Source: Octopus sinensis (lineage: Eukaryota). Taken from it: a stretch of 64,000 bases of DNA. The translations under genes and the position numbers were made by a program. Below, piece by piece: positions 26,501-30,966 of this stretch. The notes below the pieces were generated by a model. It had not been told where the DNA came from, did no database searches, and saw only the letters and a program-made list of their open reading frames with translations. The stretch's first letter is position 1. Every line of letters starts with the position of its first letter. The stretch is taken from NCBI RefSeq assembly GCF_006345805.1, contig NC_043012.1, positions 44,888,001-44,952,000 of the forward strand, given 5' to 3'.

Positions 26501-27338
26501 TTAGTTGAGGAAATGTCCTGCTCTCTTGTTTCCGCCATTTTCGTGGAAATTATTTATGTTTTCTTTGAATTCTCTTCTTATTCGGGAAATTTAGCTTCAG
26601 TGACTTAACCATTTGACCTGATCCTTAGAAACTCCCTGAGTTTGCCCCTTCCTAGATCCATTTTTCTCAATTCACCTTCATCAGTTGTTCTTTGACCGTC
26701 TAGGCTCTTGTTTTCTAGCAGGTGTTCATACTAATGCTACTTTGGTATCTTTCCACAATCCATTTTGAGTGTTATCATAGATGCCAGTGCTTTATTTCAG
26801 GAAACAGACCACTGTAATCAGTTTCGGGATGCAGCTCTTCATCTGAAACTTCATTCAGCAAGAAGACGTGACAGATGTCGCCAAGGGATCTGTTTACCTT
26901 TTATCTTTTACCACTGGCCGTAATTATGATACATTTAATAGGAATTGTTTGACCAATTCGTGGTTCTAAGGCAGTATTACATAGATTTCCAGATCTATTG
27001 TTGTCTTGTGAACGCCACATGGGCCTTCGAAAGGCTTCCTTGGGTTACATATGTTTGCCCATTTGACTTTTGTCAACGAACGTCTCGCTCCATAGAACTA
27101 ATTTTGACAGGAAAATAAAACAGGGAGCTCTTTAGTGGACTTGAGCCAGGCAACAGACCGAATAATTATCTATAACCAAATCCTCTACGGAGCTACAGTT
27201 ACGAAAGTTAGTCTACATGGACCTAAAACTAAAACACATGTAGGCGGAGTGTATATACACCCATGTGCTTCGTTGATGTTGATCAGTTAGCTGATCGGCT
27301 TAAGCGGGGCAGGGTCGTTGTTTATTTATAATACATTC

Positions 27339-27386
27339 AGGCCTGCTGATGATTACGTAAGTATGAAATCACTGTGATACAGGTCT
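27339..27386 (+). ncRNA. Type I hammerhead ribozyme, copy 1
   Basis: Stem I AGGCCUG/CAGGUCU (7 bp, one G.U); core CUGAUGA at 27346-27352; stem II U-UAC-GUAA-GUA-U (GNRA loop); GAAA; palindromic stem III AUCAC-U-GUGAU; predicted cleavage AUA after 27379. Confidence 0.8.
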
Positions 27387-27814
27387 ATATTTTTAAATGT
27401 CTTACTTTGAAAAATTGCATTCGGTGGGATTAGTAATATTTTTGGTAGAAATGACTGATTGTCCCTCTTAGCGTTTGGCATGTATGTATAATGCCTTCTG
27501 GCATGTATGTATAATGCCCTCTATATATAAATTAATATGTTCAATAAGAAATAATTATTTTCGAAATTTTTTCTCTTATGAGGTTTTTACGCTATCTACC
27601 TGACAATTTCTTGTTAAGTTTTCCTTATTAGTAGTTGTCCTTATAGCTAAATTTTTATTCCGAAAAAACTTTTCCTCTCCCGAAATGCAATTCGTAAAAG
27701 TTTGCCATTTACCCGGATGTAATATATGTAAACTCACCCATGTGCTTCGTTGATGTTGATCAGTTAGCTGATCGGCTTAAGCGGGGCAGGGTCGTTTTTA
27801 TTTATAATACATTC

Positions 27815-27862
27815 AGGCCTGCTGATGATTACGTAAGTATGAAATCACTGTGATACAGGTCT
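27815..27862 (+). ncRNA. Type I hammerhead ribozyme, copy 2
   Basis: Same motif as copy 1; predicted cleavage after 27855. Confidence 0.8.
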
Positions 27863-28287
27863 ATATTTTTAAATGTCTTACTTGAAAAATTGCATTCGGT
27901 GGGATTAGTAATATTTTTGGTAGAAATGACTGATTGTCCCTCTTAGCGTTTGGCATGTATGTATAATGCCTTCTGGCATGTATGTATAATGCCCTTATAT
28001 ATAAATTAATATGTTCAATAAGAAATAATTATTTTCGAAATTTTTTCTCTTATGAGGTTTTTACGCTATCTACCTGACAATTTCTTGTTAAGTTTTCCTT
28101 ATTAAGTAGTTGTCCTTAATTGCTAAATTTTATTCCGAAAAAACTTTTCCTCTCCGAAATGCATTCGTAAAAGTTTGCCATTTACCCGGATGTAATATAT
28201 GTAAACTCACCCATGTGCTTCGTTGATGTTGATCAGTTAGCTGATCGGCTTAAGCGGGGCAGGGTCGTTGTTATTTATAATACATTC

Positions 28288-28335
28288 AGGCCTGCTGATG
28301 ATTACGTAAGTATGAAATCACTGTGATACAGGTCT
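28288..28335 (+). ncRNA. Type I hammerhead ribozyme, copy 3
   Basis: Same motif as copy 1; predicted cleavage after 28328. Confidence 0.8.
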
Positions 28336-28761
28336 ATATTTTTAAATGTCTTACTTTGAAAAATTGCATCGTGGGATTAGTAATATTTTTGGTAGAAATG
28401 ACTGATTGTCCCTCTTAGCGTTTGGCATGTATGTATAATGCCTTCTGGATGTATGTATAATGCCCTCTATATATAAATTAATATGTTCAATAAGAAATAA
28501 TTATTTTCGAAATTTTTTCTTATGAGGTTTTTACGCTATCTACCTGACAATTTCTTGTTAAGTTTTCCTTATTAAGTAGTTGTCCTTAATTGCTAAATTT
28601 TATTCCGAAAAAACTTTTCCTCCTCTCCGAAATGCAATTCGTAAAAGTTTGCCATTTACCCGGATGTAATATATGTAACTCACCCATGTGCTTCGTTGAT
28701 GTTGATCATTTAGCTGATCGGCTTAAGCGGGGCAGGGTCGTTGTTTATTTATAATACATTC

Positions 28762-28808
28762 AGGCCTGCTGATGATTACGTAAGTATGAAATCACTGTGA
28801 TACAGTCT
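28762..28808 (+). ncRNA. Type I hammerhead ribozyme, copy 4 (one G missing in stem I 3' strand)
   Basis: Core and stems II/III intact; CAGTCT in place of CAGGTCT; predicted cleavage after 28802. Confidence 0.72.
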
Positions 28809-30966
28809 ATATTTTTAAATGTCTTACTTTGAAAAATTGCATTCGGTGGGATTAATAATATTTTTGGTAGAAATGACTGATTGTCCCTCTTAGCGTTTGG
28901 CATTATGTATATGCCACTTCTGGCATGTATGTATAATGCCCTCTATATATAAATTAATATGTTCAATAAGAAATAATTATTTTCGAAATTTTTTCTCTTA
29001 TGAGGTTTTTACGCTATCTACGACAATTTCTTGTTAAGTTTTCCTTATTAAGTAGTTGTCCTTAATTGCTAATATATATATATATATATATATATATATA
29101 TATATATATATTCATATATATATATATATATATATATATATATATATATATAATATATATATATATATATATATATGTATATGCACGCCACTATTTGCAA
29201 ATACTCCACACACACACAACCAACACACAGACAAATACACACATGTGTGTGGTTTTCTCAAAGTTTCCGTTTACCAAATTCCAGTTAAAATTTGTTGAGA
29301 TATGATAGTTAGAATCTACCGAAAGTGCTGGGCACTGGGTTCGAACCTGGGACCAAGTATTTCTGAAGAAAACTTCTTAAACACGCAGTTATGCCAGTTC
29401 CTTGTCCATAAAACACCTGACATTTTTTTCGAGATTCTAGGCACTGATTTCTTTGTTTTACAAACCAATTAATATTTCTGATGCTACACTCAAGAATGGA
29501 AAGTCTTCCATAGATATTTATTCGCACAAATCGTTGGTGTTATTCTAAGATAGTTTCCCTCCAGCTGTTTAATAAATAATATCAAGATATCACGATTCAC
29601 ATGTATTTAATATGTAACCATTATAGCATTGCTGAGGTCGAGTACTGGAAGATTATTTTTTGAGTTTTGTTACTCTTTCACAAAGCATGACATTGAATAT
29701 ATATGCACTCTCTCAACTAAATCGAAAGTTAAAAACACAAACGAAGAGCAACAAAAGTTAACAAAAAGAAATAACTACGGTAAATGTATACAAACAACAG
29801 AAAATAAACGAAAATAAGCAAATATGCATTTTGGAGCGTAGGGTAGAATATTTTCAATCAAAAAGCAATTTCGGCGACTATTTGACTGGATAATGTAACC
29901 ATCACATGTTTCCTGGACCTTAGCGTTATTAATGGTTCCTTTGCAGAATATTACGTAAAAGAGCAGGTTGTGCTGTAAAGATAATTCAATATTGCGAACA
30001 TGGTATTGATTGTAATATGTGCAAAGTGTGTGCAATGGAGAAACCCCTCAGCAGAATAAAGGAAAAGAGCAAAAAGGAAGAAGAGGAATGAAAAGGCAGC
30101 ACTGTTTTTACTGACGTGTTTGTGTTATTGTGTGTATAAGTATCTGTTTGCATTTGTGTTTGTACGTTTCTGTGTGTGTGTTTGTGTGTTTCTGCGTGCG
30201 TGCGTTTGTGTGTGTGTATGTGTGTGTGTGTGTGTATGTGTGCGTGCATTTGTGTGTGTGTGTGTGTGCGTGCATGTGTGTGTGTGTGTGTGTGTGTGTA
30301 TGTTTTTCTCTCATGTGCGAACCGTTACTGAAAAACAATATTGTTTTTATTTAAAGGTTAATGTTATTGCATCAGTGATTGGTTTTTATGTTTACATCGA
30401 TATCACTATAAACAGACACAAAGCACCTACGTTATATACACATACATACATACATAGATACATACATACATACATATATATATACATACATATATATATA
30501 TATATACAGGCATAGATACAAATACATGCACGTTCACATTCATACAGGCAACGAAGAGACACATACACATGTAAAGAATCTGTCAATTACAATCGCACCG
30601 ATATTCATACACTCACACATTATAACTACATACATATACACACACACACAAATATACTTACATGTCTGTATGCGTGTAGATATGAATATCTGTATGTATG
30701 TATGTATATATGTATGTATATATATATATATTGTTTATATACATATAAAATGTGTGTGTGTGTGTGTAGCAACGGTTATGCAGCCATTTAATCATAAATG
30801 CTTATGAAAGGTAATCTACGCAAAACCAGGCTCTGATATTCTTTCATCTCATGATTTTGTTATGAGTAAATTTGTGTAAAGAAAATCCGATTTCATGCTA
30901 AGAACGGTCTAGATCGGGTTTATCTCCGCTAACAATATCCTATTTGCTTTCATTTTAACCTATATG

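Follow-up and report, generated by a model that had tools for sequence, protein, structure and literature searches.

What is the head-to-tail repeat that occupies positions 27258-29072 on the plus strand of a 64-kb stretch of the Octopus sinensis genome (assembly GCF_006345805.1, contig NC_043012.1, positions 44,888,001 to 44,952,000; the whole of this stretch is here termed the window), and what does the hammerhead ribozyme motif recurring in its units tell us about its origin and function? The original prediction assigned the repeat to the retrozymes or hammerhead satellites, an assignment which its sequence anatomy upholds, while the silence of the Rfam models and the damage to the fourth unit do not. 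We consider it probable, with due reserve, that the array is a genomic copy of a metazoan retrozyme of the kind without long terminal repeats (non-LTR retrozyme), a hammerhead satellite operating by the mechanism proposed below. The presence of the sequence anatomy that defines such an element, comprising a type I hammerhead per unit, a non-coding AT-rich repeat and a self-paired monomer, is supported; transcription, cleavage, ligation, reverse transcription and the involvement of a helper element we infer from the published biology of the family.

The array and its units

The array was delimited by Tandem Repeats Finder (TRF) and its units were aligned by MAFFT. TRF describes 3.8 copies with a period of 473, 96% matches and 2% indels, confirming the earlier estimate of about 3.8 near-identical units of ~475 bp; the unit measures ~473-476 bp and the whole array spans ~1.8 kb. 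It is the sole long-period tandem repeat of the window, and a blastn search with the unit against the window retrieved the four array copies and no further copy in the 64 kb. The units are as follows.

27258-27736 (+): array unit 1 (TRF, MAFFT)
27737-28209 (+): array unit 2 (TRF, MAFFT)
28210-28683 (+): array unit 3 (TRF, MAFFT)
28684-29072 (+): array unit 4, truncated (TRF, MAFFT)

With a GC content of 33% and a longest open reading frame (ORF) of 54 aa, the unit is non-coding, as had been claimed. An exact look-up of 10 spurious unit ORFs gave no match, and no relative emerged when a 42-aa ORF on the antisense strand of the unit was used for a homology search. The internal T5-T6 runs noted at the outset are likewise present in the sequence of the unit, and the additional hairpins described there could be located.

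27281-27296 (+): 6-bp hairpin GAUCAG-UUAG-CUGAUC, identified in the sequence, present in every unit and formed in the circular minimum free energy (MFE) structure
27476-27522 (+): two GGCAU...AUGCC hairpins from an internal 23-nt duplication (TRF period 23, 2.0 copies), paired in the circular MFE structure

The first of these hairpins belongs to a GC-richer domain immediately 5' of the hammerhead.

Across the four units the mean column identity is 93%, and 28 of 393 alignment columns vary, about half of them by 1-2-nt indels, an error type characteristic of uncorrected long reads. One could therefore suppose that noisy long reads were mis-assembled, expanding one unit or a dimer to 3.8 copies. 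We regard this as highly improbable: the 28 differing columns include true substitutions and unit 4 contains a rearranged hairpin, while unique flanks anchor the array on both sides. Moreover, provided that two or more units remain, the element would be of the same kind even with fewer copies.

The hammerhead motif

The motif of units 1-3 reads AGGCCUG-CUGAUGA-U UAC GUAA GUA U-GAAA-UCAC U GUGAU-A/CAGGUCU on the plus strand (the slash marks the predicted cut) and has type I topology, in which helices II and III are capped and helix I is left open. The conserved core, C3-A9, G12-A14, A15.1-U16.1 and H17 = A (CUGAUGA ... GAAA ... U-A), is kept in all four units. Helix I comprises, in units 1-3, 7 bp including one G.U pair; helix II consists of 3 bp (U-A, A-U, C-G) capped by a GUAA loop and stacked over a U10.1.U11.1 mismatch; helix III is palindromic and leads into the cleavage site AUA.

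27339-27386 (+): type I hammerhead of unit 1, predicted cut after A27379 (descriptor: helix I 7 bp, helix II 3 bp plus U.U, helix III 4 bp; covariance model R1: 17.9 bits, E 0.0078)
27815-27862 (+): type I hammerhead of unit 2, predicted cut after A27855 (descriptor, R1)
28288-28335 (+): type I hammerhead of unit 3, predicted cut after A28328 (descriptor, R1)
28762-28808 (+): damaged hammerhead of unit 4, notional cut after A28802 (alignment column 125; R1 14.5 bits; rejected by the descriptor)

A complete type I hammerhead had been claimed for each unit. This holds for units 1-3, with their full core and 7-bp helix I, but not for unit 4, which has lost a G from the 3' strand of helix I (CAG-UCU; alignment column 125), so that the helix is bulged; in the MFE structure of the unit 4 motif helix I is no longer formed. 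The proposal of a helix III closed by a single nucleotide had to be abandoned, since steric constraints forbid 5 bp capped by a 1-nt loop; in a monomer, helix III can realistically have 4 bp and the 3-nt loop CUG. By contrast with these two revisions, the predicted cuts after 27379, 27855, 28328 and 28802 and the resulting monomer lengths stand, H17 falling at exactly those positions.

27380-27855 (+): predicted monomer RNA, 476 nt, from cut site to cut site (H17 positions)
27856-28328 (+): predicted monomer RNA, 473 nt (H17 positions)
28329-28802 (+): predicted monomer RNA, 474 nt (H17 positions)

A motif beyond chance

A hammerhead has few fixed nucleotides, and the question then is how often a motif of this quality would arise fortuitously. 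Our descriptor required CUGANGA, helix II, GAAA, a helix III ending in U, an H17 other than G and helix I, and was applied to both strands. In its strict form its only matches in the 64 kb were the three intact motifs of the array, with a chance rate of 0.03 per window as estimated from 300 dinucleotide-preserving shuffles, none of which contained a motif as good as that observed (0/300). A relaxed form, loosened until all four published, experimentally cleaving retrozyme hammerheads were recognised, again found the array only, against 0.075 matches per shuffled 64 kb on both strands (200 dinucleotide shuffles). Such a motif has a probability of less than about 6e-4 of arising in any one 475-bp unit, and we take it to be more than a chance occurrence.

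Independent evidence comes from a covariance model, R1, trained with known structure on three published cleaving hammerheads, those of the coral Amil224, the mussel Mg353 and the axolotl Ax353 (PMC7229834 supplementary Table 2). No sequence of the window entered the model; the axolotl Ax330 was left out of it, as its longer helix II was shifted by one column in the MAFFT alignment. When R1 was searched with filters off over 128 kb in total, the first four matches in the window were the four array motifs, all of them full-length, units 1-3 scoring 17.9 bits each (E about 0.008, a rough value) and unit 4 14.5 bits; the fifth match was an artefact involving helix I only. By this profile the motif is hammerhead-like, though of low information content and modest score.

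It is in this context that a fortuitous resemblance has to be considered, whereby an ordinary minisatellite or satellite without any RNA function happens to combine some 13 fixed core nucleotides with three short helices. Such an account draws on the little information that the motif contains (17.9 bits on R1, and no match by the Rfam models at E<=10), on the unremarkable stability of the 48-nt hammerhead segment (z -0.9) and on the relaxed rate of 0.075 per 64 kb, which would amount to hundreds to thousands of fortuitous matches in a genome of gigabase size. Yet none of the 300 shuffles was as good, and the probability of less than about 6e-4 per unit refers to a match inside the window's only long-period tandem repeat. 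Furthermore, the combination of a tandem unit of ~0.5 kb, type I topology, a palindromic helix III, low GC content and a self-paired monomer is the signature of a published family. Accidental resemblance is, in our estimation, improbable.

Dimeric folding and the circular monomer

Helix III alone contributes -0.2 kcal/mol, and the form in which the motif might act is suggested by the folding of two copies together. The two-copy MFE structure is the classical double hammerhead, at -28.3 kcal/mol against 2 x -10.3 for the separate segments, in which both helices I and both helices II are retained and a 10-bp intermolecular helix III is built around a central U.U. Dimer-assisted cleavage is thus thermodynamically plausible in the model. 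Cleavage as a dimer had been anticipated from the first inspection, and the homodimer MFE structure, being precisely a double hammerhead, supports it, although for a reason slightly different from the one then given.

The predicted 476-nt monomer, folded as a circle, has an MFE of -122.7 kcal/mol, compared with -89.7 +/- 5 for shuffled sequences (z -5.6 to -6.4), and none of 100 shuffles reached so low a value. In this predicted circular structure helices I and II of the hammerhead are built across the point of ligation, and helix I opens into a multiloop in which 7 nt, AUAUUUU, are unpaired.

Relation to known hammerhead repeats

Metazoan non-LTR retrozymes are tandem repeats of 150-450 bp and low GC content (below 45-50%) giving rise to RNAs of 170-400 nt; they contain one type I hammerhead per unit and neither LTRs nor a primer-binding site (PBS) or polypurine tract (PPT), and coral, mussel and salamander members are already known (Cervera & de la Pena 2020, PMC7229834). 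Their canonical type I motif combines helices I and II of 6 bp and 4 bp, respectively, with a helix III whose short palindrome favours dimers (Cervera & de la Pena 2014). With the retrozymes Mg353 of the mussel Mytilus galloprovincialis and Ax353 of the axolotl the octopus array shares head-to-tail non-coding units of a few hundred bp bearing one type I hammerhead each, a low GC content, the lack of LTR, PBS and PPT (the latter two were not searched for specifically in the array) and a predicted circle that is self-paired. The likeness to Ax353 goes further, extending to the U.U beneath helix II, to H17 = A and to the short palindromic helix III, such that the descriptor signatures of the two (a 3-bp helix II over U.U, H17 = A) are nearly identical.

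The differences are equally clear. Helix II of the octopus motif, consisting of two A-U pairs and one C-G pair under a GNRA loop, is weaker than in Mg353 and Ax353, and there is no sequence similarity to either outside the core; the array has been seen at one locus. Its ~475-bp unit is longer than the 150-450 bp of the metazoan retrozymes described earlier (PMC7229834). It falls inside the range of 51-972 bp given in a July 2026 preprint, which argues that retrozyme units derive from the terminal repeats of Penelope-like elements, or PLEs (doi 10.64898/2026.07.22.740005). By the operational definition of that preprint retrozymes possess at least two consecutive hammerhead units with an MFE below -5 kcal/mol, and the array does so.

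The classical hammerhead satellites, cited in PMC7229834 and PMC4209133, are newt satellite 2, Schistosoma Sm-alpha and cave-cricket pDo500. These are tandem satellites transcribed as multimers and carrying a self-cleaving type I hammerhead; the array, known by its sequence, shares their tandem type I anatomy. The newt, Schistosoma and cave-cricket motifs keep the G10.1-C11.1 pair together with loop 1/loop 2 contacts and are said to be detectable by Rfam Hammerhead_1, whereas the array is without that pair, without recognisable loop contacts and unseen by Rfam. The newt motif, its helix III being weak, requires the double-hammerhead form (Forster et al. 1988, as related by Cervera & de la Pena 2014).

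The minimal hammerheads (min-HHRs) of PLEs likewise combine type I topology with a tandem arrangement and a proposed action as dimers, and belong to retroelements that insert into microsatellites. They differ in lacking helix III and in having a helix II of 6-8 bp, an extra nucleotide after A9 and a G10.1-C11.1 pair, and they flank an ORF encoding a reverse transcriptase (RT) and a GIY-YIG domain; the array, by contrast, has a helix III, a short helix II and U.U at 10.1/11.1. Its identity as the pseudo-LTR (pLTR) of a PLE was rejected, there being no ORF for RT and GIY-YIG beside the repeat and no hammerhead of the minimal form. Plant LTR retrozymes are also non-coding and non-autonomous, with transcripts that are cut by hammerheads, circularised and copied by a borrowed reverse transcriptase, but they carry type III hammerheads in LTRs of ~350 bp, a PBS, a PPT, 4-bp target-site duplications (TSDs) and a GC content above 55%, and are usually dimeric (Cervera et al. 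2016, PMC4918200). None of these plant features (type III hammerhead, LTRs, PBS, PPT, TSDs, high GC) is present in the array, PBS and PPT not having been searched for specifically.

As to novelty, full-text literature searches found no hammerhead repeat or retrozyme described in octopus or any other cephalopod, except for one line in the giant squid genome paper which lists 235 Rfam Hammerhead_1 loci (PMC6962438). The original prediction nevertheless rated the novelty of the element too highly: the family itself is well described, including in a mussel, and the squid loci are on record.

Probable insertion into a microsatellite and a proposed mechanism

The array is bordered on both sides by TA repeats.

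27252-27257 (no strand): left junction TATATA, directly before the first array base (sequence)
29073-29182 (no strand): right junction, (TA)n microsatellite of 110 bp (the TRF interval, 29072-29182, starts at the last array base)

When the flanks are joined without the array, a single continuous (TA)n tract results; the flanks are unique in the window and there are no terminal repeats. The hexamer TATATA covers 1.3% of window positions, and perfect (TA)>=6 tracts, 71 in number, cover about 2.8% of the window, which gives a chance of about 0.028 for a random point. It is therefore improbable that TA repeats flank the array on both sides by coincidence, and insertion into a microsatellite is indicated. 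A bias towards microsatellite insertion has been reported for PLEs (PMC8557442), and PLEs themselves have been reported in cephalopod genomes (PMC8557442, PMC6962438). The position of the array in a (TA)n tract would fit this bias.

In published work the metazoan retrozyme circle is considered most likely to be closed by a protein ligase and not by the ribozyme, with PLEs as likely helpers (PMC7229834, PMC7761336). By analogy, the octopus array would be transcribed from its plus strand, either by read-through or from a promoter of its own, into an RNA in which each ~475-nt unit bears a type I hammerhead. Two hammerheads of the multimeric transcript would then most likely pair via the palindromic helix III to form a double hammerhead, since the helix III of a single motif is very weak, and each would cut after AUA (A27379, A27855, A28328). 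A host enzyme of the tRNA-ligase type (RtcB-like) could close the monomers into highly self-paired circles, which the RT of an autonomous element, a PLE being the favoured candidate, would copy more than once round. Finally, the multimeric cDNA would integrate inside a (TA)n microsatellite.

Retrozyme or relic

A number of observations weigh against the identification of the array as a retrozyme operating in this way. Within the motif, the G10.1-C11.1 pair that normally closes helix II is replaced by U.U, the rest of the helix is just U-A, A-U and C-G, and no canonical contact nucleotides for a loop 1/loop 2 tertiary interaction are recognisable; mussel retrozyme motifs are without most of them as well (PMC7229834). 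A scan with the Rfam hammerhead models, proposed as a check in the original prediction, was negative at every level: Rfam 15 at gathering score reported no hammerhead or other ribozyme family on either strand of the whole window, and at E<=10 none either in 2.1 kb covering the array or in the 76 nt around the motif. As regards membership by the curated models this is a genuine negative, probably to be explained by the U.U and by a helix II that is short and rich in A-U pairs. In the 48-nt segment the hammerhead fold, at -8.3 kcal/mol against an MFE of -10.3, accounts for ~0.4% of the ensemble. Conservation is of little help, as the hammerhead contains one variable column where 3.4 are expected (P = 0.12, four units); it does not differ significantly from the remainder of the unit, and the test is powerless. 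Similarly, the antisense strand of the monomer is nearly as structured as the sense strand (z -4.9), so that a strand-specific structure is not borne out, and 2 of 36 random window segments used as controls were as extreme; the modelled self-pairing fits that of published retrozyme circles, yet is neither strand-specific nor unique.

The surroundings add to this list. A PLE in the neighbourhood was sought and rejected: the sole RT of the window belongs to an RTE-type fragment of a long interspersed nuclear element (LINE), 10 kb away on the opposite strand and without GIY-YIG. A hammerhead pattern in which core and helix III were fixed found no further copy in metagenome and viral contigs, nor did a 24-mer from the GC-rich part of the unit match metagenome contigs; with one locus only in the window and the sequence collections searched, there is consequently neither covariation nor evidence of mobility. 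Finally, only one of nine Xenopus retrozyme dimers predicted bioinformatically cleaved in vitro (2026 preprint, doi 10.64898/2026.07.22.740005), and activity of the array hammerhead should therefore not be assumed.

Some of these points lose part of their force on comparison with ribozymes of established activity. The four published active motifs likewise do not adopt the hammerhead as their MFE structure, and because they fail too, the MFE of the 48-nt motif was rejected as an uninformative test of folding. The mismatch at 10.1-11.1 is indeed present, as had been observed, but the doubt over activity attached to it is eased by the axolotl HHR_Amex2/Ax353, which has the same U.U and self-cleaves, to 22% in one hour and far better as a dimer (PMC7229834).

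The same observations could nevertheless be accommodated by a relic or a satellite maintained at the level of DNA. The array would then descend from a hammerhead-bearing ancestor, a PLE pLTR or an old retrozyme, with a hammerhead that is no longer competent or never was and no cycle of circles, and would have grown by unequal crossing-over or replication slippage beside the microsatellite. The weak helix II with its U.U, the silence of Rfam, the damage already present in unit 4 and the single locus seen are all compatible with decay, as is the inactivity in vitro of eight of the nine predicted Xenopus dimers (2026 preprint); the same preprint proposes that retrozyme arrays arise as PLE terminal repeats and are then amplified locally, and the array does lie in a microsatellite-rich region. 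Against this origin, no core nucleotide and none of the three helices has been lost from units 1-3, the U.U variant of the axolotl is active, and the monomer is markedly self-paired in the manner of expressed retrozyme circles. In addition, the units are 96% alike and their amplification is therefore recent. A relic is on these grounds unlikely, though it deserves to be taken seriously.

That the array is a retrozyme copy thus remains the reading we prefer, and it can be extended. The array could represent an active cephalopod retrozyme producing abundant ~475-nt circles by means of an obligately dimeric hammerhead variant, with U.U at 10.1/11.1 and an A-U-rich helix II, invisible to Rfam, and mobilised into (TA)n microsatellites. 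This extension we advance tentatively, as something possible rather than likely.

Other features of the window

When 150 stop-to-stop peptides, drawn from the whole window, were scanned against Pfam, one RVT_1 and one mariner HTH_48 domain were returned; among the same peptides no GIY-YIG domain was found. The RVT_1 domain (16129-17049, minus strand) is of RTE type both by its relatives and by its FVDxxKAFDSV and FADN motifs, and lies in a degraded RTE-type LINE at 14185-17744 (-), the best relatives of which are turtle, fish and nematode RTE fragments with 50-80% identity. According to a review, RTE elements can have truncated twister ribozymes at their 5' ends; Rfam at gathering score found no twister ribozyme in the window. 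The mariner peptide, one of the 150 scanned, is a Mos1/mariner HTH_48 match with E 1e-6. An exact look-up of 10 ORFs from the array flanks and the RT gave no match, and no host exon was recognised in the window.

Several features resemble genes for small RNAs. The sequence GGTTCGAACC at 29338-29347 (+), within GGGCACTGGGTTCGAACCTGGGACC and ~265 bp downstream of the array, is similar to the B box of transfer RNA (tRNA) genes; the GGTTCGAACC/GGGCACTGGGTTCGAACCTGGGACC region may be part of a tRNA-derived short interspersed nuclear element (SINE), and ARAGORN called no tRNA at 29338-29347. A full-length match to 5S ribosomal RNA at 20007-20125 (-) (RF00001, 71.7 bits, E 3.6e-13) could be a gene, a pseudogene or the head of a 5S-derived SINE. 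A borderline tRNA-like sequence at 34999-35072 (+) scores 29.6 bits with the Rfam tRNA model, for which the cutoff is 29, and is called tRNA-Val(TAC) by ARAGORN; it has several non-canonical pairs in the acceptor and T stems and may likewise be a tRNA-derived SINE. About 440 bp upstream of it lies a degenerate 56-bp tandem repeat (34296-34561; 4.9 copies, 68% matches).

The microsatellite load of the window is very high, with 114 TRF rows, mainly of (TA)n, (CA)n, (TATC)n and (TTC)n. A 52-bp unit is repeated at 47412-47516 (2.0 copies, 98% identity; TRF).

Implications

The array adds a member to the known retrozyme family and is no new kind of element; the picture of what retrozymes are is unchanged by it. 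The points that distinguish it are modest, namely a unit slightly above the classic size range, a weak and non-canonical helix II such as is found in one active axolotl family, and invisibility to Rfam. The clean insertion into (TA)n is a small clue to the machinery that mobilises animal retrozymes, for which the 2026 preprint argues that PLEs are responsible.

Since curated Rfam models miss variants of this type, genome annotations probably undercount them; the count in the squid genome paper, for example, is of Rfam-detectable hammerheads only. Were the octopus hammerhead active, it would be the second natural hammerhead to work without the G10.1-C11.1 pair, and the production of circular RNAs by ribozymes, as in retrozymes, would be extended to the cephalopods. 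If the array does belong to an active retrozyme, cephalopod genomes would contain an unannotated layer of ribozyme-processed circular RNAs.

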